In this document: positions 12-11,922 of the stretch, piece after piece | How the letters are laid out: every line of letters begins with the position of its first letter | Position numbering within the stretch: the first letter of the stretch is position 1 | Sequence record: PP496443.1 | DNA: 64,000 bases | Strand: one strand, 5' to 3' | Made by a program: the position numbers and the translations under genes | Notes under the pieces: model-generated | Seen by the model: only the letters and a program-made list of their open reading frames with translations | What the model was told of the DNA's origin: nothing | Databases searched by the model: none

Positions 12-755
12 ATGTCATCCCCGTATGGAAAGACAAGTGGCGGGTCAGACCAACCCGCCACCGCAGGATTCACCGACGAACAGGTAATGGACAGTTTGTT
101 CAACTCGTTCCGGCCTGTTCCGGTCAAATACACAGTGGAAGTAATCTCGCCGATATGGCTGCGCACCGAACCGGCTCACCCCTGTCTAGTTCCATGCGTG
201 CCCGTGATCCCGGCGCAGCCACTGGTGGGGGAGTACGAGGAAGCCCCCACAAGCTCGCAGGCGGACGATGAGGAGGATGACCCCGATGATGACCGGTTCA
301 AGCGGCTAGCGCTCGCCTATCCGGGGCTGACGCGCTCGGAACTGGAAGCCATTGAAGGTGAAATCGTTGACGTTCTGGATATCGATGAGGACTTCAGAGA
401 TGAGTTCCTGCGTGACACCCAAGATATGGCGACCAGTATCCGGGAATTCCTCTTCAAGCAAATCGCACCGATGGCTGTAGGTTCCAGTATTGCGTTCGAC
501 GAATTCAATCAGGAACTGTCTGCTGTCCTCGGGGACAAGAACGCCACTTCCAATTTCTCCACCGTCAAGCAGATGCTGGAGGACGCCATGACCATGAAGA
601 CTTTCGAGTTCCTGACCGAGCAGCTCAGCCTGTCGCCGGAAAGCTCGCGCCACGTTCTGTCGGTCTTCATGGCGAAGCGCATCTCCCCCGGAGGTAAGGG
701 CCGAAACACGGAGTCCTTGCTCAAGGATCTGCTTAACGCTACCAAAGGCGCATAA
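12..755 (+). CDS. Hypothetical acidic protein; positional candidate for terminase small subunit
   Basis: GGAGG SD before ATG; ends 1 nt before terL; no recognisable motif, so the function call is positional only. Confidence 0.45.
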   Translation: MSSPYGKTSGGSDQPATAGFTDEQVMDSLFNSFRPVPVKYTVEVISPIWLRTEPAHPCLVPCVPVIPAQPLVGEYEEAPTSSQADDEEDDPDDDRFKRLALAYPGLTRSELEAIEGEIVDVLDIDEDFRDEFLRDTQDMATSIREFLFKQIAPMAVGSSIAFDEFNQELSAVLGDKNATSNFSTVKQMLEDAMTMKTFEFLTEQLSLSPESSRHVLSVFMAKRISPGGKGRNTESLLKDLLNATKGA

Positions 756-756
756 C

Positions 757-3138
757 ATGGCAGCCAAACCACCTGACAAGATCTCACGACGTAAGCTACA
801 GGAACTTCTGGATCGGAAAGAGGATCAACTCAAGTCTGATCGCCGATCCAAGAAGATCATCACCAAGCTCACGTCGTTCGAGAAGGCGAAAGCCGAAGCC
901 AGAGACATCACCAAGCCCTATCACAAGGAAGTGACTCTGGACGACATCATGGACCTTCGCGGAATGCTGGGCGGCAATCGCGCCATGGCCCCGTTGGAAG
1001 GTCAGTTCCTGATGACACCGGAGGAAGAACAGATCTCGGAACTGGGACTGTCGGAAACGCTGGATGAGATTTTCTCCAGTGGTATCGGCTTGCCTCCTGA
1101 CCTGAAGATCGATGACCGGGATCTGAAAGCGCTGCCCAACGTATTCGAGTGGACTACTTCGAAGATGGGCGCTAAGATGAAGCCGTACGCCCGGCAATAT
1201 GAGGTGATGATCAAGTCCTGCTCTGAGTGGTGCCCACCGTGCACTAAGAAGCGCTGGCCGAAACACAAGATGGGTTTCGCGAAATCGTTTCACTACTCGC
1301 CCGCTCTCCCCGTGGATTTTGACGTAGCCAACATTGACGACTACGTTCAGCACTTGGAGAACGGGCGTTGTCCGTGTTGCAAGAAAAGAAAATCGGAGTT
1401 GGTGCGCAGCGGGCAGTTGCCTCTGGTTACCGAACTGGACATGTGTCTGGGTCAACGGGCGGGTAAGTCTGCAACGATCTATTCGCTGATCCCCTACCTC
1501 ATTCACCGCTGGCTCAAGGTTCCTTCCCCGGTACAGGCGCTGGGACTGCTGGACAACACCCTGCTTTCTGGGGTAGTGGTTGCCCTGACCTACGCTAAAG
1601 CCACGTCCCTTCTCTGGCAGCCGATCCACAACGCTATCTCGAACACCGGCTGGTTCAAAGAGTACAACGCGCTGTTGAACCATTACCAAGAGTTCTACGG
1701 CGAGGAATTCTTCAAGCTGAAAGACTCGTTCGTGCAGTACGGCCATCGGAACATGATCTTCAGTCCCTCCGGCCCGAACAAGCGTACACTCCGGGGTGAG
1801 ACCCGTATCTGGACCGGCACTGACGAAATCGGTTTCTTCTACCATGGCGATGACGGCGATGACAAGGAACGTGCATCGGCCAACGAGGTATATGTATCGC
1901 TGGGTAACTCCCTGTTCACGGTTAAGAAGGCAGCGGAAACTGCCTTACTGTCCGGCATGGATGGTATCCCTATGACTCTGATGGCGAACATCTCCTCGCC
2001 ATCGAGCTACAAAGATAAGATCATGTCGCTGATCCGTGAGTTCGAGAACGAGCCTACCGTCGTGACCATGCACTTGCCTACCTGGGAGTTCAACCCCAAG
2101 ACCAGCAAGGGTGACTTCAAGAAGGAATACGCGGCGGATCCCGTCAAGGCAGACCGTGACTTCGGGGCTAACCCGCCGATGTCCGAGAACCCCTACCTTC
2201 CTGACCTCGAACCCATGAAGCGTCAGGTGCTCAAGTCCCAGCGCAACATGGTAGAGTACGAGTACAAGCTGATCAAGGCTACTAACGGTGCACCGCAGCG
2301 CTATGCCAAGATCAAGCGACTCCGTGAGTTCATGGACAAGGTGCCGAAGCACGTGATGACCATCGACGCCGGGCACAGCAACAACTCCTTCGCCTTGACC
2401 GTTGGTTATCCTGAGATGTTCCGAGGGAAGCTTCGTCTGGTGTGCACGGGTGTGGTGGAAGTGGCACCGACACATGGCCAGAACACGATCAACTTCACCA
2501 AGATCGCCAAGGAAATGATCTACCCGCTGATCGAGCACTTCAACGTTGGTCTTGTGGTGACTGACCGCTGGAACTCTTTGAAGCTGCTGCATGACATCGA
2601 AGACGAGTACGGTATCTTCACGTTGCAGTACAGTCTGCGACCAGACGACTTCAACTTTATCTACGACTACTACATGGATGAAGACTTCGCGTACGCCCGT
2701 ATTCCCGTGCCTGAGATTCCCATTGATCAGATAATGGACGTCGATATCGATGAGTATCCGAAGTGCTTCGGTCCCGGCAACAAGACCACGGGCAGGCCAA
2801 TGCCTGTAGCGCACATGATCCATCAGTCGCAAACAGTTCAGGTGAATAGCCGGGGCAGTGTGGACAAAGGATTGGGTCTGACCGATGACATCTTCCGTGC
2901 GTTCAACTTGCTCACCTATGTCTGCGTGGATGAGGAGTACGTGGAAGAGTACATGCTGCTAACGGGTTCGGTCGCGGGTGAGAAGCGTGCCATTGGCGCA
3001 ATGGCAAGAGGTGGCATAACTCCGGGTAGTCGGGGCAGTGGTGGCAAGGCCATGAGTACCTCCGTCGGTGCGGTCGCGGGGGCGAGCACAGCCTCCGGCA
3101 GCGGCGGGAACGGTGTATTCAGCCGTACGTCCCGCTAA
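757..3138 (+). CDS. terL: Terminase large subunit
   Basis: Walker A LGQRAGKS, Walker B IWTGTDEIG, coupling motif NISSPS, RNase H-like nuclease motifs IDAGHSNNSFA and TDDIFRA; lies upstream of a portal-like gene. Confidence 0.9.
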   Translation: MAAKPPDKISRRKLQELLDRKEDQLKSDRRSKKIITKLTSFEKAKAEARDITKPYHKEVTLDDIMDLRGMLGGNRAMAPLEGQFLMTPEEEQISELGLSETLDEIFSSGIGLPPDLKIDDRDLKALPNVFEWTTSKMGAKMKPYARQYEVMIKSCSEWCPPCTKKRWPKHKMGFAKSFHYSPALPVDFDVANIDDYVQHLENGRCPCCKKRKSELVRSGQLPLVTELDMCLGQRAGKSATIYSLIPYLIHRWLKVPSPVQALGLLDNTLLSGVVVALTYAKATSLLWQPIHNAISNTGWFKEYNALLNHYQEFYGEEFFKLKDSFVQYGHRNMIFSPSGPNKRTLRGETRIWTGTDEIGFFYHGDDGDDKERASANEVYVSLGNSLFTVKKAAETALLSGMDGIPMTLMANISSPSSYKDKIMSLIREFENEPTVVTMHLPTWEFNPKTSKGDFKKEYAADPVKADRDFGANPPMSENPYLPDLEPMKRQVLKSQRNMVEYEYKLIKATNGAPQRYAKIKRLREFMDKVPKHVMTIDAGHSNNSFALTVGYPEMFRGKLRLVCTGVVEVAPTHGQNTINFTKIAKEMIYPLIEHFNVGLVVTDRWNSLKLLHDIEDEYGIFTLQYSLRPDDFNFIYDYYMDEDFAYARIPVPEIPIDQIMDVDIDEYPKCFGPGNKTTGRPMPVAHMIHQSQTVQVNSRGSVDKGLGLTDDIFRAFNLLTYVCVDEEYVEEYMLLTGSVAGEKRAIGAMARGGITPGSRGSGGKAMSTSVGAVAGASTASGSGGNGVFSRTSR

Positions 3139-3191: not shown

Positions 3192-3419
3192 ATGCTGAAC
3201 GTATTCGATTTGATCAAGAGTAAGATGCCTAACGTCCACATCGAAGAAGCCCGCGTGGCGGAGGAACGTGAGATGGCTACGGCAGGGCTGAGCAACGATG
3301 ACCCTCTGGTGTGCCCCGTGTGCAAAGAGCGGACCCAACCGATCATGGGGGGCAATAACGTACCCATGCTCATCTGCGAGAAAGACCGCGTAGCCATGCC
3401 TGTCCCTGAAGGGGTCTAA
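3192..3419 (+). CDS. Small zinc-ribbon protein (CPVC...CEKD) with an N-terminal leader ending EMATA
   Basis: GGAG SD; CxxC pair; lies between terL and portal. Confidence 0.7.
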   Translation: MLNVFDLIKSKMPNVHIEEARVAEEREMATAGLSNDDPLVCPVCKERTQPIMGGNNVPMLICEKDRVAMPVPEGV

Positions 3420-3420
3420 C

Positions 3421-5235
3421 ATGATCCGAATGAACAACCGCATGCGGTTATCAGACAAGAATGGTCGCATGACGACCATCGCGTCACCGCAGAGCATGAG
3501 TGGCAGCATGGGTGCAGGGGGTCACCCCATGACTCGCGCCATGGGTGGCAACGCGTCCACCCGAGACAGCTTGCTTGACGGCATCCTGAAGCTCGACCCG
3601 GATGTCATGCGTCAGATCTACATGGACATGTACCTGTTTGATCCGACCATCGGCGGCGCCACCGACTTGCTGGCCCAGAGCCCGTGGTCGGATTACGATC
3701 TGGTAGACGCTGAGCCGGATCAACTGGACGTCTTCTACCGGTCGATGGAATTGCTGAACTACCGAGAGCTGATGCCGGAGTTCACCATCGACTACCTGAC
3801 GTTGGGCGCCGCTGTAGGTACGCCGTTGTACAGCGTATCGGAAAAGGCATTCACCGACATCATCCCGCACTCCATAGCCAGTATTCAGGTTCAAGAAGTT
3901 CCGCTGTATTCCCAAGACCCGGTGCTAACGCTGCTGGTACCGGAAGAGATGCGCACGTTCGCGACCAGTCAAGACCCTTATGTGGTTAAGATGCGGCAGC
4001 GCATGACACCGAAGATGGTGGAAGCATTCCGAGCGCAGGAGGTTGCACTTGATCCGGTGACCACGCTGTACGTACCCCGCACTTCGTTCTCGACAGTGCA
4101 GCAAGGCGTATCGCTGTACACCCGCTTGATCCCGATCTACTTGCTCGAACGTCTGCTGTACCGTGGCACGTTGACTGAGGCTACTCGCCGCCAGCGCTCG
4201 ACGTTGCACATTCAAGCCGGTGACGATCTGTGGAACCCGGACGACAATGAGCTGAACAGTCTGGTGCAGCTGTTCCTGCAAGCCGAGCAAGATCCAGTGT
4301 CGGCCATCGTCGCTACCCAGATGAACGTGCAGACTCAGGAGATTCGAGCTGCCGGTGACTTCTGGAAGTGGACGGATAACCTGGAGCAGTTCAACGACAT
4401 CAAGCTGCGAGGCATGGGGATCAACGAATCCTACATGTCAGGTGATGTGACCTACGACAACCTGAGTACCAGTGTTACCATGTTCCAAGAGCAGCAGGAC
4501 TCGCTCCGGGAAATGATGGTGCGTAAGACGCTGTACACCAAGGTGTTCCCGGTACTGTCGATCACCCACGACTTCCGCCGCAAGGAAGAGTCGAGTCATG
4601 CTCGCCGCGAGATGGCTACGGCCAAGGCTGCACAGAAGCGTACCCTGAACGATTCGTTCGCGTTCCAGGTGAACGACAAATCGTCGCTGGTCATCCCCAA
4701 AGTGGTGTGGCACAAGAAGCTACGTTCCATGTACACCGAAGGTTCGTTCGACATCCTCGAGAAGCTGTCGGAAGCTGGTCTGCCGGTTACACTCCGGGCA
4801 TGGGCCGCTGCCGGGGGTTACGACCTGGATAGCGCCATGCAGGCAATGGCCGACGACGCCAAGCTGCGGAAGCAGGTGTCAGACTTCAAAGCCGAGAACG
4901 GTATCGACGCCGGTACGGAAAACGACTTCAACCTCGATGGTGATACCGAGCTGTCGATGGTCAGGTCCGCATCCGCATTGCTGGATAAGGCAATGGGTGG
5001 CCGGGGTATGAAGCCACTGGGTCTGCTGGGCCGTGAGTTCAGCGAGGCGGATTCCGAAGTGGTACGCCATGATCACTCTGGCAAACGCAAGTGGGTTCCT
5101 GACCAGCACCGTGCCAAGCGGGAGGAGAACGATAAGGCGATGAAGGCGTTGAAGCAGGCCTCTGATCCGGACTTCCGTGCCAAGACGATTGCCGCCGTTA
5201 ACCGTAGACAAGGCGCGAGAAAGACTCGCGGCTGA
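3421..5235 (+). CDS. Portal protein (probable)
   Basis: 604 aa after terL; helical pattern typical of large-phage portals (YLFDPTIGGATDLLA, YTRLIPIYLLE, FNDIKLRGMGINESYMSG). Confidence 0.7.
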   Translation: MIRMNNRMRLSDKNGRMTTIASPQSMSGSMGAGGHPMTRAMGGNASTRDSLLDGILKLDPDVMRQIYMDMYLFDPTIGGATDLLAQSPWSDYDLVDAEPDQLDVFYRSMELLNYRELMPEFTIDYLTLGAAVGTPLYSVSEKAFTDIIPHSIASIQVQEVPLYSQDPVLTLLVPEEMRTFATSQDPYVVKMRQRMTPKMVEAFRAQEVALDPVTTLYVPRTSFSTVQQGVSLYTRLIPIYLLERLLYRGTLTEATRRQRSTLHIQAGDDLWNPDDNELNSLVQLFLQAEQDPVSAIVATQMNVQTQEIRAAGDFWKWTDNLEQFNDIKLRGMGINESYMSGDVTYDNLSTSVTMFQEQQDSLREMMVRKTLYTKVFPVLSITHDFRRKEESSHARREMATAKAAQKRTLNDSFAFQVNDKSSLVIPKVVWHKKLRSMYTEGSFDILEKLSEAGLPVTLRAWAAAGGYDLDSAMQAMADDAKLRKQVSDFKAENGIDAGTENDFNLDGDTELSMVRSASALLDKAMGGRGMKPLGLLGREFSEADSEVVRHDHSGKRKWVPDQHRAKREENDKAMKALKQASDPDFRAKTIAAVNRRQGARKTRG

Positions 5236-5260
5236 CATTTATTTTCCATGGAGAGCAAGA

Positions 5261-6979
5261 ATGAAAAACAATCCACAAGTCACGCGCCTTTCCGCCTTGG
5301 CTGCTGCTGGTATCAACGTCAAGTCAGGTTCGCCGGTCGATGTCGTGCATCAGCACACTCGCACTCTGGGCAACAACATCGAGAAGCTGAGCCAGCCACG
5401 TCAGTGGGCCATTGCTCACCTGATGAACGAAGCGGCTGACCTGCTGGTTGTCGAAACCGGTACGCTGCAAGACGACTACATCGACTACTTCAAAGGTGCA
5501 CTGGAGAAGTTCAGCGTATCCTCCCCGGCCGAACTGTCCCAAGAGAAGGCTTCCGAGTTCTTCAACTGGATCAGCGCCAACTGGAAGAAGGGCGAAGGCC
5601 CTAAAGCCGAAGCCAGCGTCGAGACTGCCAAGACCGGTGCAGGTGCTCCGTACGACGCCGTTCTGGACACCTTTTCAGGGGACGGTTCGTACATGGTCAT
5701 TGACGTAAATGGTTCTACCGTAGCAGAAGGTTTTCCTACCCGTGAAGCCGCTGGTAGGAAGGCTGACGAACTGGACAAGAAGGCCGGATTCGATATCCAT
5801 GACTACGTGGCGAAGAATGCCCCGGATGAAACCTATGGTCGAGGCAAGCGCCCACCCTTGCCTGTTCGTACAGGGCGTGCTCAACCAAGGCACCTTTCTT
5901 CAGCGGAAACTGAAACCGCCAGCCAGTTCTCCTTCGTCAAAGTCACCCAGAACGGTAACACGTATCGTCTGGAAGCTTCGGACACCGGCAACTTCAAGTC
6001 CGTCATGATCTGGAAGGGTGGCGTGTGGACGAAGCCAGGTCCGGACGAAGCGTTCAAGGATAAAGAGCCACACCGCATGCTGGGTGCCCTGCGCACGCCC
6101 AACGGTGCAGAACTGGCTACCCTCAACCTGCCGGAAACTCCGGTGGCAAGCATGGAAGAGATGGCCGAGCTGTTCGGCGCCATGGGTATCGAAGAGAGCG
6201 AGATCCGTCGCTTCTACGGCGGTGGTCCAGAGTGGAATGATCGCAGCGTCTACGATGGCAACATCCCGAGCGTATCCCCAGCCAATCTGGGTGTGAACCC
6301 AACTTACGCCTACACCGACATGCACCCGCTGCGTGCCTACGAGGCGGAAGACACCATCCGTATCAATGGTCTGGACGCCACGTTGCAATCCATCGACAAC
6401 GGGCAGGCTGTGTTCACAGTTGACGGCGTAGATACCACCACGGTGCCGCTGGACAACATCGTGGTCGCTGAAGGTGAAGCCTCGGTAGTAGCCACTGCCA
6501 TGGTATCTCATCGCGTACTGGTCACTGCCGGTCACGAAGACCTGACTCAGTACAAGTCGCTGCGTCACGACTTCGAGACTGTTACCGCGAACCACCAAGA
6601 GCTGTCACAAGTCAAGGTAGGCCCGGCGCTGCAAACCCTCGCCAAGGCGGGTAACCGTCGCGCTCTGGTACTGGCTCACGCCGGTGTGCAGCGTATCAAC
6701 GAAGGTCATGCACTGCTCAAAGCCTCCATCGGCTACGGCAAGGAAGCGGCGACCGCCAGTGTCATCACAGAGCTGGCCGATCTGAACAACCTGTGTGGCA
6801 AGGATCAAGTGTCGGCACAAGACGTGATCGACTCCGCGCCCGTGGTCACTCATCTGAAGCAGGGTGAGTTCAAGGCCGACATGCCGGACGTGGTTGACTC
6901 TTCGGACTTCGAGCTGAACGACCCGCAAGCCGAACAGGCGTCCACGCGCAAGAGCCGCTTCCCAAGCCGCAAGCGCTAA
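5261..6979 (+). CDS. Putative head-associated or scaffold-like protein
   Basis: Start moved to ATG 5261 (GGAG SD 7 nt upstream); lies between portal and protease; several xTA motifs (VETAK, TETAS, VATAM, AATAS). Confidence 0.55.
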   Translation: MKNNPQVTRLSALAAAGINVKSGSPVDVVHQHTRTLGNNIEKLSQPRQWAIAHLMNEAADLLVVETGTLQDDYIDYFKGALEKFSVSSPAELSQEKASEFFNWISANWKKGEGPKAEASVETAKTGAGAPYDAVLDTFSGDGSYMVIDVNGSTVAEGFPTREAAGRKADELDKKAGFDIHDYVAKNAPDETYGRGKRPPLPVRTGRAQPRHLSSAETETASQFSFVKVTQNGNTYRLEASDTGNFKSVMIWKGGVWTKPGPDEAFKDKEPHRMLGALRTPNGAELATLNLPETPVASMEEMAELFGAMGIEESEIRRFYGGGPEWNDRSVYDGNIPSVSPANLGVNPTYAYTDMHPLRAYEAEDTIRINGLDATLQSIDNGQAVFTVDGVDTTTVPLDNIVVAEGEASVVATAMVSHRVLVTAGHEDLTQYKSLRHDFETVTANHQELSQVKVGPALQTLAKAGNRRALVLAHAGVQRINEGHALLKASIGYGKEAATASVITELADLNNLCGKDQVSAQDVIDSAPVVTHLKQGEFKADMPDVVDSSDFELNDPQAEQASTRKSRFPSRKR

Positions 6980-6991
6980 TCATCTGGACAG

Positions 6992-7009
6992 GGGGATCGC
7001 AAGGTCCCC
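6992..7009 (+). other. GCAA-tetraloop hairpin, copy 1 (GGGGATC-GCAA-GGTCCCC)
   Basis: Intergenic 7-bp stem with no U-tract; near-identical copies at 13036 and 48098. Confidence 0.7.
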
Positions 7010-7026
7010 TCATCAGGAACTTGACT

Positions 7027-9063
7027 ATGACTATCAAGAGTGCTACGTTTGCGGAAGCTGAATCGCAAGCTCAAGGCCTAGCCAACTCCATGGGATGGCC
7101 AGGTGAGGTAATGGACAACGGTGACGGCACTGTCACTCTGTCGCCACCCGACGCATGGGATGAGGAAGAGAACCCCGGCAAGGTGGCAGCGTCCAAGCTG
7201 ACCGGTAACAAGGACTGTCACGTCTTCGCCAGTATGGCGGTACCCAGTGAAGGCGAGTGGATGGCTGTCGTCATTCAAGGTACCCCAGCGCTGGTACTCA
7301 TCGACCAAGGATCTGGTGAAGGCTGGTTGACCCTTCAGGCCCCCGCGGACTTCGATGTTCCGGAGAGCGTGCTGATTCCTTTCCAACAACGCTTGACCCA
7401 AACGGAAACTGCTTCAATGGACCTTGAACAAGACGTAGAACTGGCAGCAGGGAAGAAAAAATCGGAAGTGGACCAACTTATCGAACTGCGACAGGAATAC
7501 GATAAGCTTCAATTCTCAAAGTCGAAATTGAGCGTACACGGTAAGAACCCTACCAGCTCTCGTATCATCTCAGCGAAGAAAGGGTTGATAGAACGGGAGA
7601 AGGAATTCAAGGACAAGTTGAAGAAATTGGTCCCGTCGGGTCGTATTCCTACCATGGAGAGTTTGCAGAATCGTAAGATGCGGGAATCGGGAATTAAACC
7701 TCCGACCAAAGCTGAGAAGGATTCGGCCAGTGAGCGTCGGATGTTGAAGAGTGAAAAAGACAGGCAGACGAGAGTAGCTACTACAGTAAAGAAACACGGA
7801 GTAACTGAATCGGAAGCCAATACCTTGCACCGGGGCAAATACCCTAAGTCCTATTATAAGGATGAACGGGACCTGGATGAGATCAGTCATAAGTTGAAAA
7901 ATCCTAGGCTTACGGATGAGCAAGAAGCTAAGTTGGAGAAAGAGTTGAAAGACTTGCGCACGAAGTTCAAGGAAAAGAAGAAGAAATACGATGCCGTCCT
8001 CAAGGAAGGGCGGGAGGAATCTTCGGTTCAGCCGGATACCCGTACGCAGGTTCTGGCTAACGTCTCCAGCGACCCGGCCACTCCTGCGTATCAGGAAGCA
8101 TCTATCACGGGAGTTACACCAGAAGGCCACATCTCAGTAGCATTCGCTGACGGCGATATCGGTGTGTACCAAGGTAAGTTCGACCCTGCTGGTCTGATGC
8201 CAATCGCGGAAGCGGCAGGCGTTGAAGTTGCCAGCTTCAGACACCACACCATGGTTCTGGCCAACGTTGGCACTGCGGCAGCACCTGAATACGCCGAAGC
8301 AGAGGTGATTGGTTCCACCGAGGAAGGCCATCTGGAAGTCGCGTTCGCCGATGGTGACGTGGGCATCTACCGTTCCTTGTTCCACCCTACCGGTATCTTG
8401 CCGCTGGGTGTGACTGCCGAGACGGCCAGTGTGCTCATCGAGGTGGCCGCACGTACGGCAATGACCCCGGAGCAGAAGCTCAAGCGTGCACAGGACCTGC
8501 TCAAGCTGCGTACGCTGCACGACAAGTACGAGACCAACACCGACGCCCTGAAAGGCAAGAAAGGTCCGGAGAACAAAGCCAAGCGGGACAAGAACAACGA
8601 GGACAAGGCCAAGCTCCGTGCCAAGCTGGACAAGATGGGTGTCACATCCCTGCCGAGCAAAGCTCACCTGCAGCGTACCATCAAGCAGCACAGCGATCTG
8701 CCGACCCGTATGCGTGCATCGGACAAGAAGCCTGCTGCTAAGGTACCAACGAATAAGGCAGCACGGGACGCGGCCAAGAAGAAGTATGCGCCTGCTAAAG
8801 AGGACAAAGGATTAGACATGCGGATTAAGGCTCCGGGGTATGCTGAAAGGAATTTCGGCCCTGCTGCCATGAAACGAAAAGAGGAAAGAAAGTCTTTGCC
8901 CAAAGCTACTCAGGACAAGATCAAGAAGTTGGAAGCAAAGATAGAAGAGACGCTTACGGACATCCATAAGGGTTCCATCAGTAAAAAGGACGTTCAGACT
9001 GCCCGCGACCAAGTTAAGGCTTGGAAAGAGCAAGTCAAAGAACTTTCTACCCCGGCTAAGTAA
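7027..9063 (+). CDS. Modular head-type protein: two Lys-rich modules flanking two tandem Tudor/SH3-like repeats
   Basis: AGGA SD; repeats VLANV...VAFADGD.G.Y at about 8050 and 8254; basic modules LIELRQEYDKLQ..KDKLKKL..RIPTMESLQ and LLKLRTLHDKYE..RAKLDKM..SLPSKAHLQ. Confidence 0.65.
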   Translation: MTIKSATFAEAESQAQGLANSMGWPGEVMDNGDGTVTLSPPDAWDEEENPGKVAASKLTGNKDCHVFASMAVPSEGEWMAVVIQGTPALVLIDQGSGEGWLTLQAPADFDVPESVLIPFQQRLTQTETASMDLEQDVELAAGKKKSEVDQLIELRQEYDKLQFSKSKLSVHGKNPTSSRIISAKKGLIEREKEFKDKLKKLVPSGRIPTMESLQNRKMRESGIKPPTKAEKDSASERRMLKSEKDRQTRVATTVKKHGVTESEANTLHRGKYPKSYYKDERDLDEISHKLKNPRLTDEQEAKLEKELKDLRTKFKEKKKKYDAVLKEGREESSVQPDTRTQVLANVSSDPATPAYQEASITGVTPEGHISVAFADGDIGVYQGKFDPAGLMPIAEAAGVEVASFRHHTMVLANVGTAAAPEYAEAEVIGSTEEGHLEVAFADGDVGIYRSLFHPTGILPLGVTAETASVLIEVAARTAMTPEQKLKRAQDLLKLRTLHDKYETNTDALKGKKGPENKAKRDKNNEDKAKLRAKLDKMGVTSLPSKAHLQRTIKQHSDLPTRMRASDKKPAAKVPTNKAARDAAKKKYAPAKEDKGLDMRIKAPGYAERNFGPAAMKRKEERKSLPKATQDKIKKLEAKIEETLTDIHKGSISKKDVQTARDQVKAWKEQVKELSTPAK

Positions 9064-9085
9064 CCACACCTGACTGGAGCATGAC

Positions 9086-9844
9086 ATGAACGTGTTTGAA
9101 ATGATTGCCCAGCAGAACGCCGCGATGAAACCCATCGACGTGCACAAGCTGGTTAAAGGCAAGGATGTAGATCCAAAGCTCAAGGAGATGACCACGGCCA
9201 AAGTCGGTATGCCCGGCTTGGCCCAGGCCATTACGTTCGCGGAGTGGTTGCCGTTCGCGGCCAAGACGTATCACTGCTCGCCGGATCCGAAGGATTACAT
9301 TCTGGTCCCGAACATCGTGATGCCGTCGGAGATCCCCAACCGGAATGGCGTGGGCTTCCCCTTGCAGCAACTGGTACGCTTCAATCCTGAGACTGGTTGC
9401 CAAGGCTTCCGTACGGCAGTCGGCAAGGGTACGTACGCGGACCACCAGAACAACACCGTCGCCCCGCTGGCGAAAGGCGTGATCGTGGATTCGTTCATGC
9501 GCCCGCTGGAAGGCTTCAAGGGCGGCGTGTGGAAGTTGCTGTTCCTCTTGGCGTACGACCGGTCCAAAGACCAAGCGCTCACCAACGCCATCTTGGCGGG
9601 CACTCGTACCAACTACAGCATGGGCGCGTACCTGACCAAGTACACGTGTTCCATCTGTGGCCGGGACCGGGGCCAGTGTGTGCACTTGAGCGCGCAGAAA
9701 GGTTCGGTGAACTTCCGCAAGGTAGGGAACCAGCTGGCGTACTCGCAGGCATACGAACCAATTTTCTTCGAGACGTCCTCGGTAGAAGATCCGGCTTTCG
9801 TATCGTCGATCACCGGCGCTGATCACCTGCTTATCACTCGGTAA
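9086..9844 (+). CDS. Prohead maturation protease (probable)
   Basis: GGAG SD; motifs NRNGVGF, ADHQN, NYSMGA, CSICG..CVH and FFETSSVEDPAF match the large-phage prohead protease pattern; located in the head module. Confidence 0.7.
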   Translation: MNVFEMIAQQNAAMKPIDVHKLVKGKDVDPKLKEMTTAKVGMPGLAQAITFAEWLPFAAKTYHCSPDPKDYILVPNIVMPSEIPNRNGVGFPLQQLVRFNPETGCQGFRTAVGKGTYADHQNNTVAPLAKGVIVDSFMRPLEGFKGGVWKLLFLLAYDRSKDQALTNAILAGTRTNYSMGAYLTKYTCSICGRDRGQCVHLSAQKGSVNFRKVGNQLAYSQAYEPIFFETSSVEDPAFVSSITGADHLLITR

Positions 9845-10039: not shown

Positions 10040-10076
10040 CGCCCGCTCTGGCAATCGCTGGGGCGGGCTTTTTCGT
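10040..10076 (+). terminator. Intrinsic terminator closing the head module
   Basis: GCCCGC...GCGGGC stem followed by TTTTTCGTTT. Confidence 0.7.
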
Positions 10077-10108
10077 TTCCGCCGACGGGAAACAGGCCTA
10101 ATTAAAAA

Positions 10109-10154
10109 TAGTTGCACGGGCTGTTTTGGGTGTGCTATAATAGCACCATGGCAC
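10109..10154 (+). promoter_or_regulatory. Sigma70-type promoter P1 with palindrome over -10
   Basis: AT-rich upstream tract; TTGCAC-18-TATAAT with TGn extension; GTGCTAT-A-ATAGCAC perfect inverted repeat. Confidence 0.8.
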
Positions 10155-10168
10155 TATTCAAGCGCCGC

Positions 10169-10185
10169 CCACTGTCCCAATGAGG
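10169..10185 (+). promoter_or_regulatory. Conserved leader/SD motif CCACTGTCCCAATGAGG
   Basis: Near-identical copies at 12168, 30356, 30800, 47594 and 52491, each 6-9 nt before a start codon. Confidence 0.7.
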
Positions 10186-10194
10186 AAAGCAACC

Positions 10195-11922
10195 ATGACC
10201 AGATTGACCCTAGCAACCGTTAACGCCGAGATCGCAAAGTCCGGTGGCAAAGAAACTCTGGTCAAGGGTAAAGGCTACTTCTACTGGGTCGGTGGCCGTG
10301 CCGATGCCGATCCTCAAATCTGGACTTCCATTTACGTTGCTGCGCTGAATCAGATGTCGATGGCCCAGTGGCTGGAAGACTGGAAGCGCAATGACGACCA
10401 ATACAACAAACCTACTCCCGACAAGGAAACCCGCAAAATGGCTATCAGACACGTTCAGACCCTCGCAGCTCCTGCTCGTCCAAAACCGCCTACCGGTGCA
10501 AAAGCAGGTGGCGGCAAGTCAATCGAAGAGAGAATCGAATGGAATGAAGGTAGGATCAAGGAGGCTACTGCGGAACTGAAAGCCACCAAAGATCCGAAAG
10601 CTATTGACAAGATCAAAAAGCAGATTGATATCTACAAGGGTAACATCGCCGGTTTCAAGAAAAGGATGAACCCGGAAAAGAAACCAGCACCGGCCAAAGG
10701 TCCTAGCGGTGCTGCTGCCAAGAAGCGTACCACTGCTGCCCCTGCACAGGAGACTGCTTCCCCGGCTACCGACTTCGCCAAGTCGTTGAAGAAGGGCGTT
10801 CGTGTACTGGTCAATCTCGGCAACGCCAAAGAGCCGTCCTACTTCCTCGGCGCCATCACCAAGAACAACGCCAGCAAAGGTTCGGTCAATGTGCTGTTCG
10901 ACGACGGCGACGTTGCAGAAGTCCGTGCGATCAAATCCAAGGTCGGTATCGTGGGCATCGCCATCGATAAGGTACGCAAGTCGGAAGTTCCTGCTGACCA
11001 GATCGACAAGTGGCTGGCCGGTGCAGCTACAACGACTAAGACCCCTGCCAGCCCGAAAGCGGCGGGAGAGTGGACTGTCAAGTCTATTGTGGCGTGGCTG
11101 GAAAGTGCAGGCTATACCAAACCAGAACCAACTCGGCTTCCTACCCGGTTCGAAAGGAAGCTCCCGTCTGGTGCTGTGATTCAAGCAGATGTAAATATGA
11201 AAAAGACCGTGGCCCTAACCGCCATGGGTAAAGAAGGGTATGTACATTACACAGTTGACTCCTTCGCCAAGCTCAAGAACGCAGACTCTTCGCTTGCCAA
11301 GTCGGCTGTTGTCGGCACCAAGGTAGGGAACGCATTGATCCCGCCGAAAAAGTCGGGTTCACCTAAACCGTTCAGCCCAGCGGAAGCCCGGAAGGTCATC
11401 GGTGCTATCCCCGGCTGGAAGGCATCCAACGTGAAGAACAAAGCGTCAGCCACGTTCACCAAAGATTACCCGAACGGTGTCACCGCCACTGCTTATGTCT
11501 TCCCACAATACGTGTCGTTCGAATACCCGCAAGGTGAGAATGATCACATCAGCGACTTGTCCAAGATCGCAGCTTACATCAAGCAGATCGACGATGATCA
11601 AGCAGTAACACCCGACCAAGGAAAAGCACTGGATGCTCTGGCCAAAGCGTTGAAGGGTTGGCCGAACAAGGTCCTCCCACGGGATGCTGACGAAGACAAC
11701 TTCCTGCTGCGTGGGTTTGAAGATGTTCCAGAAGGTGTAGAGGATATAGAAGCATATGCAATCTCGGTGTTCAAGAAACTGAAAAGTGTTGACAACTTCA
11801 AGAAGAGCAAGATGTACCACGGCGACAACACATACTCCTTCTCGGCTGGCGGCACCGTGGGCTACGTGTACTTCGATGAAGATGGCGTCGGCATGGTCCG
11901 GGCAACACCGTTCGAAGAGTAA
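10195..11922 (+). CDS. Lys-rich multidomain early protein with a Tudor/SH3-like module
   Basis: Start moved to ATG 10195 after GAGG; VLVNLG..SYFLGAI..VNVLFDDGD resembles the repeats in the 7027 gene. Confidence 0.65.
   Translation: MTRLTLATVNAEIAKSGGKETLVKGKGYFYWVGGRADADPQIWTSIYVAALNQMSMAQWLEDWKRNDDQYNKPTPDKETRKMAIRHVQTLAAPARPKPPTGAKAGGGKSIEERIEWNEGRIKEATAELKATKDPKAIDKIKKQIDIYKGNIAGFKKRMNPEKKPAPAKGPSGAAAKKRTTAAPAQETASPATDFAKSLKKGVRVLVNLGNAKEPSYFLGAITKNNASKGSVNVLFDDGDVAEVRAIKSKVGIVGIAIDKVRKSEVPADQIDKWLAGAATTTKTPASPKAAGEWTVKSIVAWLESAGYTKPEPTRLPTRFERKLPSGAVIQADVNMKKTVALTAMGKEGYVHYTVDSFAKLKNADSSLAKSAVVGTKVGNALIPPKKSGSPKPFSPAEARKVIGAIPGWKASNVKNKASATFTKDYPNGVTATAYVFPQYVSFEYPQGENDHISDLSKIAAYIKQIDDDQAVTPDQGKALDALAKALKGWPNKVLPRDADEDNFLLRGFEDVPEGVEDIEAYAISVFKKLKSVDNFKKSKMYHGDNTYSFSAGGTVGYVYFDEDGVGMVRATPFEE

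Follow-up and report, generated by a model that had tools for sequence, protein, structure and literature searches.

Head proteins of phage Lauda

The stretch analysed here (the window) is 64,000 nucleotides long and corresponds to bases 1-64000 of PP496443.1, the 201,030 bp genome of Pseudomonas phage vB_PpuM-Lauda, a jumbo phage of Pseudomonas putida. The 7.2 kb region under study is 100% identical to this record, and eight sister phages share 91-98% DNA identity with Lauda. Early in the window lies a head operon with the terminase, portal and head-maturation protease genes, a small gene between terminase and portal, and gp5, gp6 and gp8; gp9 follows beyond the operon, and the gene for the major head (capsid) protein is located far outside the window (Table 1). 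Here we describe a short Ala-ending motif that is confined to head proteins in Lauda and that probably marks the sites at which the prohead protease cuts them, together with an N-terminal leader that the small protein shares with the protease. In the motifs given below, an arrow stands for the bond that would be cut.

Table 1. Positions of genes and candidate sites in the Lauda genome (aa, amino acids; PSSM, position-specific scoring matrix; arrows, predicted cut).
Feature	Position	Strand	Basis or remark
Hypothetical protein	12-755		annotation
Terminase large subunit	757-3138		annotation
Small hypothetical protein, 75 aa, between terminase and portal	3192..3419	+	annotation
Small-protein leader block 1, NVFDLI, residues 3-8	3198..3215	+	
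EMATA↓G, predicted protease site, putative cut Ala31/Gly32	3270..3287	+	
Portal protein, 604 aa	3421..5235	+	phrog_16240, E=1.9e-132
Portal RMTTIA↓S, residues 16-22, candidate cut site in disordered tail	3466..3486	+	PSSM score 10.5
Portal REMATA↓K, residues 396-402, variable low-confidence loop region	4606..4626	+	
gp5, 572 aa, modular head-operon protein, candidate processed core/cargo	5261..6979	+	weak PHROG of unknown function only
gp5 VETA↓K, residues 120-124, end of conserved N-domain/start of variable cassette	5618..5632	+	
gp5 TETA↓S, residues 217-221, cassette end/start of conserved C-terminal part	5909..5923	+	
gp6, 678 aa, Lys/Glu-rich, 68-aa tandem repeat, candidate scaffold/core	7027..9063	+	
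gp6 TETA↓S, residues 126-130	7402..7416	+	conserved in four genus members
gp6 VEVA↓S, residues 399-403, near end of repeat copy 1	8221..8235	+	
gp6 AETA↓S, residues 464-468, near end of repeat copy 2	8416..8430	+	PSSM score 11.9
Head-maturation protease, 252 aa	9086..9844	+	phrog_18299, E=5.9e-62
Protease leader block 1, NVFEMI, residues 2-7	9089..9106	+	
Protease leader block 2, PIDVH, residues 16-20	9131..9145	+	
EMTTA↓K, predicted autoprocessing site, residues 34-39, putative cut Ala38/Lys39	9185..9202	+	
Cys/His knuckle CSICGRDRGQCVH inserted in protease	9647..9685	+	conservation in 45 sequences
DUF3309 membrane-type peptide, 52 aa	9877-10035		Pfam E=1.9e-17
gp9, 575 aa, modular, 3' of operon terminator	10195..11922	+	
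gp9 QTLA↓A, residues 88-92, end of conserved N-domain, weaker candidate	10456..10470	+	
gp9 QETA↓S, residues 185-189, start of conserved middle domain	10747..10761	+	
Major head (capsid) protein, outside window	138331-139419	-	

An Ala-ending motif restricted to head proteins

An earlier note, made from the letters of this DNA, had drawn attention to a recurring “xTA” motif in the head proteins. All its strings and coordinates are correct, including every pentapeptide listed for gp5, gp6 and gp9, and GAGATGGCTACGGC is indeed identical at 3270 and 4609. The note had also proposed that motif frequency be compared between head proteins and the rest. Genome-wide counts were made on six-frame translations of the first 200,000 of the 201,030 Lauda bases; protein-level tests used a set of 238 Lauda proteins, from open reading frames built with strand blocks from the annotation, in which seven head proteins make up 3,153 aa and all other proteins 60,440 aa. 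Run in this way, the comparison does not support a generic motif: the dipeptide TA occurs 0.76 times per 100 aa in head proteins and 0.54 times elsewhere (p=0.07), and genome-wide 338 occurrences are observed where 338 are expected. VATAM, AATAS, ARTAM and VELAA are therefore indistinguishable from background and carry no weight. What holds is a narrower motif in two forms, E-T-A↓S/K and E-M-[AT]-T-A↓G/K, both exclusive to head proteins.

In the six frames, ETAS is found five times (gp5, gp6 twice, gp9 and the major head protein), ETAK once, in gp5, and EM[AT]TA three times (small protein, portal and protease). At the protein level, ETA[SK] is present six times in head proteins and absent from all others (binomial p=1.5e-8), and EM[AT]TA is likewise divided three to none. 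The codons differ among the sites (GAG/GAA for Glu, ACT/ACC/ACG for Thr, GCC/GCT for Ala and five different codons for Ser), so the constraint acts on the protein, which rules out that the ETAS sites are a signal in the DNA.

Motif sites at cassette borders in gp5, gp6 and gp9

Compared with their counterparts in the sister phages Peetri, Amme-1 and KoPa-5, gp5, gp6 and gp9 are mosaics, in which conserved domains alternate with replaced, inserted or deleted segments, with the xETA strings placed precisely where these cassettes begin or end. The mosaicism contrasts with the 91-98% DNA identity found elsewhere among the sisters. At the first border of gp5, where Lauda has VETA↓K, Peetri has VETA↓A, and Amme-1 and KoPa-5 have KETA↓G, each followed by unrelated sequence; at the second, TETA↓S is replaced by VETA↓S in all three. 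KoPa-5 gp5 carries two extra cassettes (+158 aa), each terminated by VETA↓. The open frame of gp5 reaches back to a GTG at 5177, overlapping the end of the portal gene, and the annotated start is the ATG at 5261. From this ATG the protein begins MKNNPQV, compared with MKHNPQV in the sisters and MKNNPNL in Vibrio phage GR7B, a conservation that supports the annotated start.

In KoPa-5 gp6, a deletion of about 210 residues begins two residues past TETA↓S. Lauda gp6 also contains a tandem duplication of a 68-aa unit at 8050-8457 (residues 342-409 and 410-477), and VEVA↓S and AETA↓S occupy equivalent positions in the two copies. In gp9, a variable segment is flanked by two candidate sites that are kept in four genus members: QTLA↓A, which is not among the top PSSM matches (see below), lies right before it, and QETA↓S right after it. 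Amme-1 encodes an additional protein of 403 aa (10084-11295 of the Amme-1 stretch) that is paralogous to the middle domain of gp9. It starts MIKFVEISA↓PSSDFAK, at the domain that in gp9 follows QETA↓S.

Sites in the capsid protein and the portal

In the major head protein, ETAS occupies residues 66-69 (VETA↓S, Ala68↓Ser69), within the variable linker that joins a conserved N-terminal domain to the core. The corresponding linkers of relatives read TMSA↓S, ALSS↓S, AMAS↓S, KTFA↓S and SMQA↓S. The sole relative with a solved structure is gp27 of phage G (PDB 6wkk), whose gene has 282 codons and whose residue 8 aligns to Lauda residue 75; on this basis the HK97 core of the Lauda protein begins near residue 68, where VETA↓S lies. 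Bacillus phage G gp27 is a relative by sequence as well (E=1.7e-11), and is without the N-terminal domain of about 68 residues.

In an AlphaFold2 (AF2) model of the portal (mean predicted local distance difference test, pLDDT, 66.8), residues 1-56 form a disordered N-terminal tail with pLDDT below 50. This tail contains RMTTIA↓S, in place of which the portals of relatives have G[RK]x[KT]VV[AS]↓S-like strings. The second portal string, REMATA↓K, ends a modelled helix (residues 388-404), with a pLDDT of about 51 over the motif and below 50 over residues 403-411, which follow. As only five relatives have xETA strings in this loop (RETA↓Q, TETA↓N, NETA↓N and SETA↓Q) and the others have none, cleavage at this internal site is regarded as uncertain.

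Fold and active site of the protease

The protease was modelled with AF2 on 45 homologues (pLDDT 84, predicted template modelling score 0.83). The best match to the model in the wide VIA-align comparison is T4 gp21 (5jbl, Z 9.5 over 133 residues, root mean square deviation 2.6), and further matches are the proteases of varicella-zoster virus (VZV; 1vzv, Z 7.8), human cytomegalovirus (HCMV; 8j3s, Z 6.8) and Kaposi's sarcoma-associated herpesvirus (KSHV; 1fl1, Z 4.6). The gp21 and herpesvirus enzymes hold ranks 1, 2, 3 and 5, rank 4 being an unrelated Mce1 chain. As modelled, the protease has a fold like that of T4 gp21 and herpesvirus assemblin. H120 and S178, the putative catalytic residues, are invariant in 45 of 45 diverse homologues. 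In a weak hhalign alignment (E=0.12), S178 aligns with S140 of T4 gp21 and PNRNG with VNRNK, while H120 falls three residues off the His of the gp21 LNHP motif. A comparison of the family profile with PDB sequences returned spurious zinc fingers only.

The protease also carries an inserted knuckle of the form Cys-x2-Cys...Cys-x-His, in which C188 is found in all 45 sequences and C191, C198 and H200 each in 90% or more. We know of no such knuckle in gp21 of T4 or in the herpesvirus proteases. The model is disordered over residues 1-12 and 33-45 (the latter with pLDDT below 50) and the core begins at around residue 50, which places EMTTA↓K in a disordered linker between leader and core. The segment that includes PIDVH (residues 13-30) is modelled docked on the core with a pLDDT of about 70, and the structural alignment with gp21 begins at residue 13.

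A leader shared by the small protein and the protease

The small protein consists of an N-terminal leader, a predicted cut site (EMATA↓G, residues 27-32) and a C-terminal zinc-ribbon-like core (CPVC...C). Its leader blocks NVFDLI and PNVH (residues 13-16) correspond to NVFEMI and PIDVH of the protease, so that the matching elements occur in the same order in both proteins, M(L)NVF[DE][LM]I, P-x-[DN]-V-H and EM[AT]TA, at different spacing. The N-terminal peptides that end at the predicted sites comprise residues 1-31 of the small protein and 1-38 of the protease. In the six-frame translations, NVF[DE][LM]I has two matches, one at the start of each of these proteins. The only leader block in common with gp5 is SPVDVVH at 5330-5350, which resembles PIDVH. 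A recent duplication of the leader at the DNA level is ruled out by synonymous-site differences between the two copies.

In Vibrio GR7B, Xanthomonas PhiXhv-15 and about 15 uncultured phages of IMG/VR, a homologue of the small protein is likewise encoded between terminase and portal, and there are a further 19 database proteins. While the Lauda protein has CPVC and one more Cys (C41, C44 and C62), relatives have CxxC...CxH..C. Near the N-terminus, [NDS]-[PVL]-[FL] is found in 19 of 23 small-protein leaders against 3.0±1.6 in shuffled sequences, with examples such as INPL, INPF, DPFDIF, DLFNRF and INVFDKI. In the proteases, F[DESG][LIVMT][SGI] is found in 25 of 52 (2.7±1.5 in shuffles), NVFEMI aligning with the SFDLS-type motif of distant members, and P[ILF][DE]h[HYN], the PIDVH block, in 33 of 52 (0.4 in shuffles), with P16, D18 and H20 identical in four genera. 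In both families these N-terminal motifs precede the Ala site. The motifs of the two proteins resemble each other within several phages: TINPFSDL and TINPLDMH in PhiXhv-15, LRSPLD and LSTPLD in GR7B, and KNPL and CNPL.

Runs of genes with similar starts were seen in two uncultured phages. Between portal and protease, one (L024, 3942-6178) has six genes in a row that are unrelated to one another and have only a short leader of the MR[KF]V[VI]IA↓ type in common (MRKIIVRF, MRRTTIK, MRKVIIA↓G, MRKVVIA↓S, MRFVAIA↓K and MRFVIIA↓G), the last encoding a NUDIX hydrolase. The other (L018, 1075-7447) has similar starts, such as MRIIKIKLA↓T and MRRSIILHPITA↓V, and a start of this kind is also found on a metallophosphatase (calcineurin-like phosphoesterase). 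SprT-like proteins are encoded near these runs.

Conservation of the sites in distant relatives

Relatives of the protease are 50% identical in Vibrio GR7B/GR11A, 43% in Xanthomonas PhiXhv and around 36% in Dickeya JA11, Erwinia Y3 and many others; by the capsid protein, the group also takes in phiRSL1, Lu11, PaBG and BcepSauron. With a protease profile, 80 IMG/VR loci were fetched. Under a looser, pre-stated pattern for P2-P1-P1', [TILV]A[SGNTK], 35 of 52 distinct protease N-regions contain a match, compared with 18.3±3.3 in shuffles. In nearly all homologues of the small protein, the CPxC core is preceded, across a short stretch of fixed length, by an Ala with a β-branched or hydrophobic residue in front of it, as in KQTTTA↓AL, KKSVTA↓RL, KNVATA↓RI, RIKETA↓KH, RTKETA↓NA and KEKTTA↓NL; [TILVM]-A lies shortly before the zinc-ribbon-like core in 22 of 23 leaders, against 6.1±2.1 in shuffles. 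Across distant relatives, homologous sites keep Ala and not Glu (DVTLA↓S, SIRIA↓G, KVVA↓S and KSVTA↓R).

A PSSM trained on 42 sites of other phages, none of them from Lauda, was scanned over the Lauda proteome. Nine head proteins, which make up 6.2% of residues, account for six of the top 10 matches (p ~1e-5) and 14 of the top 30 (p=7e-10); among them are the capsid protein, gp5, gp6, gp9, and two proteins encoded beside the capsid gene and annotated as “ATPase” and “virion structural protein”. The best match of the whole proteome is RVKVTA↓NI (residue 66) in a hypothetical protein whose gene adjoins that of the head-tail connector.

Other features of the region

The “ATPase” gene (140252-141781, minus strand) lies upstream of the capsid gene. 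Its product is extremely acidic, with Cys clusters at the start and three high-scoring predicted sites, AEAITA↓S, KTAETA↓N and QVTTA↓S, and looks more like a scaffold than an ATPase. Two further genes of note outside the window lie at 139483-140190 and 128098-129252, both on the minus strand. Within the window, the terminase large subunit is long (793 aa), and PHROG 17415 covers its residues 236-771 only; it has an N-terminal extension with the Cys pairs CPPC and CPCC and ends in a Gly/Ser-rich tail. The DUF3309 peptide is encoded by the last gene of the head operon, 3' of which lies the sole strong intrinsic-terminator-like hairpin of the region (10041-10078, a 12-bp stem with a T-run).

Pfam and NCBIfam gave no match for the small protein (in Pfam, nothing at threshold), portal, gp5, gp6, protease or gp9, and for gp6 there was no family match in PHROG either.

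A model of head protein processing

The explanation that we favour overall, with reasonable rather than high confidence, is that of one prohead protease with Ala-ending sites, cassette substrates and a docking leader. Products of the head operon (terminase, small protein, portal, gp5, gp6, protease and gp8), gp9 and the distantly encoded capsid protein would be substrates of one prohead serine protease. The enzyme, of the T4 gp21/herpesvirus assemblin fold, would read Thr (or Val/Ile) followed by Ala as the constant feature of its sites, for which E-T-A↓S/K or E-M-(A/T)-T-A↓G/K would be the form specific to this genus, most likely with a cut after Ala. Such processing would remove a delta-like domain of about 68 residues from the capsid protein and trim about 21 residues off the portal; the protease would lose a propeptide of 38 residues and the small zinc-ribbon-like protein one of 31. 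The proteins gp5, gp6 and gp9 would be cut into modules, with exchangeable cassettes joined by cut sites. The leader of the protease and the small protein would be a short linear motif that acts before cleavage. Most likely it would serve, in the manner of the capsid targeting sequence (CTS) of T4, to attach the two proteins to one common partner in the prohead core during assembly.

The earlier note had proposed a recognition site ending in Ala, unlike the Glu-ending sites of T4 and phiKZ. This is supported by the restriction of the motif to head proteins, its place at cassette borders, its independence of codon usage, the T/I/V-Ala pairs of relatives and the PSSM matches. Provided that cleavage occurs, it is fairly likely that Ala is the P1 residue, because the position that would be P3 relative to Glu is not conserved, the spacing from Glu to TA varies, and relatives keep Ala and not Glu. 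The other bond to consider is the one after Glu (E↓TAS, E↓MATAG), in which case T-A-S would be primed-side residues of a true prohead-protease site. The nearest solved structure is T4 gp21, whose relatives cut after Glu (PMC9026906), Glu is present in every strong Lauda site, and SVE↓TAK, AQE↓TAS and LKE↓MTTAK fit S/A-x-E or L-x-E. However, the residues preceding Glu vary (ETE, QTE, QVE, ERE, RRE), its distance to T-A differs between ETA and EM[AT]TA, the distant homologous sites listed above do not keep it, and it is absent from the capsid linkers of relatives (TMSA↓S, AMAS↓S, KTFA↓S and SMQA↓S); we consider a cut after Glu unlikely.

For the leader, the earlier note had proposed a signal that loads cargo into proheads. 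The similarity itself is real and lies in motifs that are conserved in each family, but a loading function is weakly supported, given two carriers, a chance-level score and no covariation, and the leader can only tentatively be taken for a capsid-targeting sequence. The gene runs of the two uncultured phages mirror the internal-protein genes of T4, which have only the CTS in common (PMC9026906), and on this ground a role like that of the T4 CTS stays a reasonable hypothesis. The main alternative is a regulatory propeptide, docked on the protease core and keeping the enzyme inactive until assembly; the look-alike leader of the small protein would bind in trans to the groove used by the propeptide, whether as chaperone, as inhibitor or as a decoy substrate that times activation. 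It fits the docking of the PIDVH segment in the model and the reach of the gp21 alignment to residue 13, the likeness in several phages of the small-protein [ND]P[FL] to the P[ILF][DE]xH block of the protease, and the synteny of the small gene with terminase and portal in three of three genera checked. Against it stand the lack of covariation between the leaders at 15 loci and a resemblance that is limited to 3-5 residues, and such a role is distinctly unlikely.

That the ETA strings are uncut linker or junction sequences, whether recombination points or structural linkers, and that the shared N-terminus is coincidental, would agree with their location at recombination and indel borders in sister phages, with cleavage being unobserved, with the unenriched TA dipeptide and with a leader similarity that by itself is within the range of chance, but is improbable, since codons differ at the sites, the motif is also found where there is no cassette border (capsid linker, protease linker and small protein), it is kept at homologous positions across genera at 35-50% protein identity, and it is confined to proteins expected to meet the prohead protease.

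A number of points weigh against the processing model. No proteomic or N-terminal sequencing data for the genus or its relatives were found in the literature, in which nothing was found on vB_PpuM-Lauda or Vibrio GR7B. The paper on the CEPEST collection is without proteomics, those on Dickeya JA and PaBG are without processing data, and that on the phage G capsid gives no detail of cleavage. The motif was narrowed after the data had been seen. The PSSM training sites were picked by eye once the Lauda motif was known, and the PSSM result is thus supportive and not independent; the sequences compared in the family tests are not phylogenetically independent, and a stricter regular expression for the protease linker is marginal (16 of 52 against 10.7±2.8). 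REMATAK lies inside the body of the portal and is missing from most relatives. For the protease, Foldseek found no match to the model in the PDB (best E=1.1), and Pfam, even at E<=10, and NCBIfam gave no match, Peptidase_U9, S78 and S21 included. The PIDVH segment may be a part of the modelled fold and not a detachable signal.

The leader, moreover, is carried by just two Lauda proteins. The score of their N-anchored hexapeptides is second among 28,203 Lauda protein pairs, tied with unrelated pairs, their first 42 residues rank 649th of 28,203 in local alignment, and BLASTP finds no similarity between them. Within phages the two leaders do not covary (15 loci, same-locus mean 21.3, cross-locus mean 21.3, permutation p=0.47). 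About 3 of the 28,203 pairs reach the hexapeptide score, which we estimate as around 1e-4 for a pair specified in advance. The match is meaningful because EM[AT]TA had singled out both proteins independently, and it gains more weight from the two families, in each of which the Lauda block represents a conserved motif.

Comparison with known head proteases

Proteolytic maturation of the head and targeting propeptides are already known from T4, phiKZ and SPN3US. To our knowledge, all characterised myovirus enzymes of the gp21 fold cut after Glu. According to a review, T4 gp21 cuts after Glu in L/I-x-E and phiKZ gp175 after Glu in S/A-x-E (PMC9026906), which agrees with what the earlier note had stated on T4 and phiKZ. 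The same review suggests, as a point still open, that the propeptides of gp21 might serve as a CTS-like targeting signal for the enzyme, and lists the entry of the protease into the prohead core as an open question (PMC9026906). T4, with gp21 and the CTS of internal proteins I-III, resembles Lauda in fold class (Z 9.5), in a head operon with small core proteins by portal and protease, in N-terminal propeptides that end in a protease site, a predicted one in Lauda, and in variable cargo genes. It differs in the residue cut after, the constant residue being Ala in Lauda, and in its leader: the T4 CTS has 10 residues and is common to three internal proteins, whereas the Lauda leader has 31-38 and is found on the protease and one small protein. 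Sequence similarity between the two proteases is insignificant (hhalign E=0.12; no Pfam match). Like Lauda, phiKZ (gp175) and SPN3US (gp245) are jumbo myoviruses, and many of their head proteins have short cleavage motifs and propeptides (PMC9026906, PMC5694885, PMC10052503), as is predicted for Lauda. In their enzymes, however, the S/A-x-E cut after Glu has been demonstrated by mass spectrometry, whereas Lauda belongs to a different clade (with phiRSL1, Lu11, PaBG, BcepSauron, Erwinia Y3 and Dickeya JA11), on which no processing data were found in the literature.

The predicted specificity is closer to that of herpesvirus assemblin, the VZV, HCMV and KSHV proteases being the next structural matches. 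The predicted P1 Ala and P1' Ser are the same in five Lauda sites of the form xETA↓S, and VEVA↓S follows this assemblin-type pattern also; the protease and capsid sites lie in linkers. The herpesvirus consensus is (V/L/I)-x-A↓S, and was reportedly described by Welch et al. in 1991 (a paper cited in PMC5512222). Its P3 is hydrophobic while that of Lauda is Glu, and the Lauda protease is not fused to a scaffold and has the Cys/His knuckle.

Two further systems are comparable in part. The N-terminal domain of about 68 residues that precedes the HK97 core of the Lauda capsid protein, and ends at a predicted site, recalls the delta domain of HK97. The latter is longer, at 103 residues, and the loss of the Lauda domain is a prediction. 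In staphylococcal phage 80alpha, capsid and scaffold proteins share an N-terminal leader, a mimic of ribosomal protein L27, that is removed by the host protease Prp. As in Lauda, where the site is a predicted one, two head proteins without other resemblance begin with short leaders of similar sequence, and the same kind of cleavage site closes both leaders; the 80alpha protease is host-encoded, whereas the Lauda enzyme is encoded by the phage and itself carries the leader.

Implications

It is possible, and we put it forward tentatively, that the gp21/assemblin-fold proteases of a whole, widespread clade of jumbo phages (phiRSL1, Lu11, PaBG, Erwinia Y3, Dickeya JA11, Lauda and a large number of uncultured phages) share a herpesvirus-like Ala↓Ser specificity in place of the Glu specificity of T4 and phiKZ, that protease and cargo reach the prohead by way of cleavable N-terminal leaders of a shared type, and that the cargo is encoded as polyproteins or gene arrays built of freely exchangeable cassettes with cut sites at their borders. 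The predicted specificity would link a phage enzyme to the site of herpesvirus assemblin. Head proteins built of cassettes bounded by cut sites would explain their quick turnover among sister phages, and the occurrence of the same type of leader on the protease and on a small, putatively packaged protein would make the idea of self-targeting directly testable. With the refined motif, predictions of the mature virion proteins can be made across the group related to phiRSL1, Lu11 and PaBG. As P. putida is a biotechnology host, the motif may also yield a packaging and release tag: if the model is true, the short leader and an xTA↓S junction would form a portable tag with which foreign proteins could be packed and released in P. 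putida phages.

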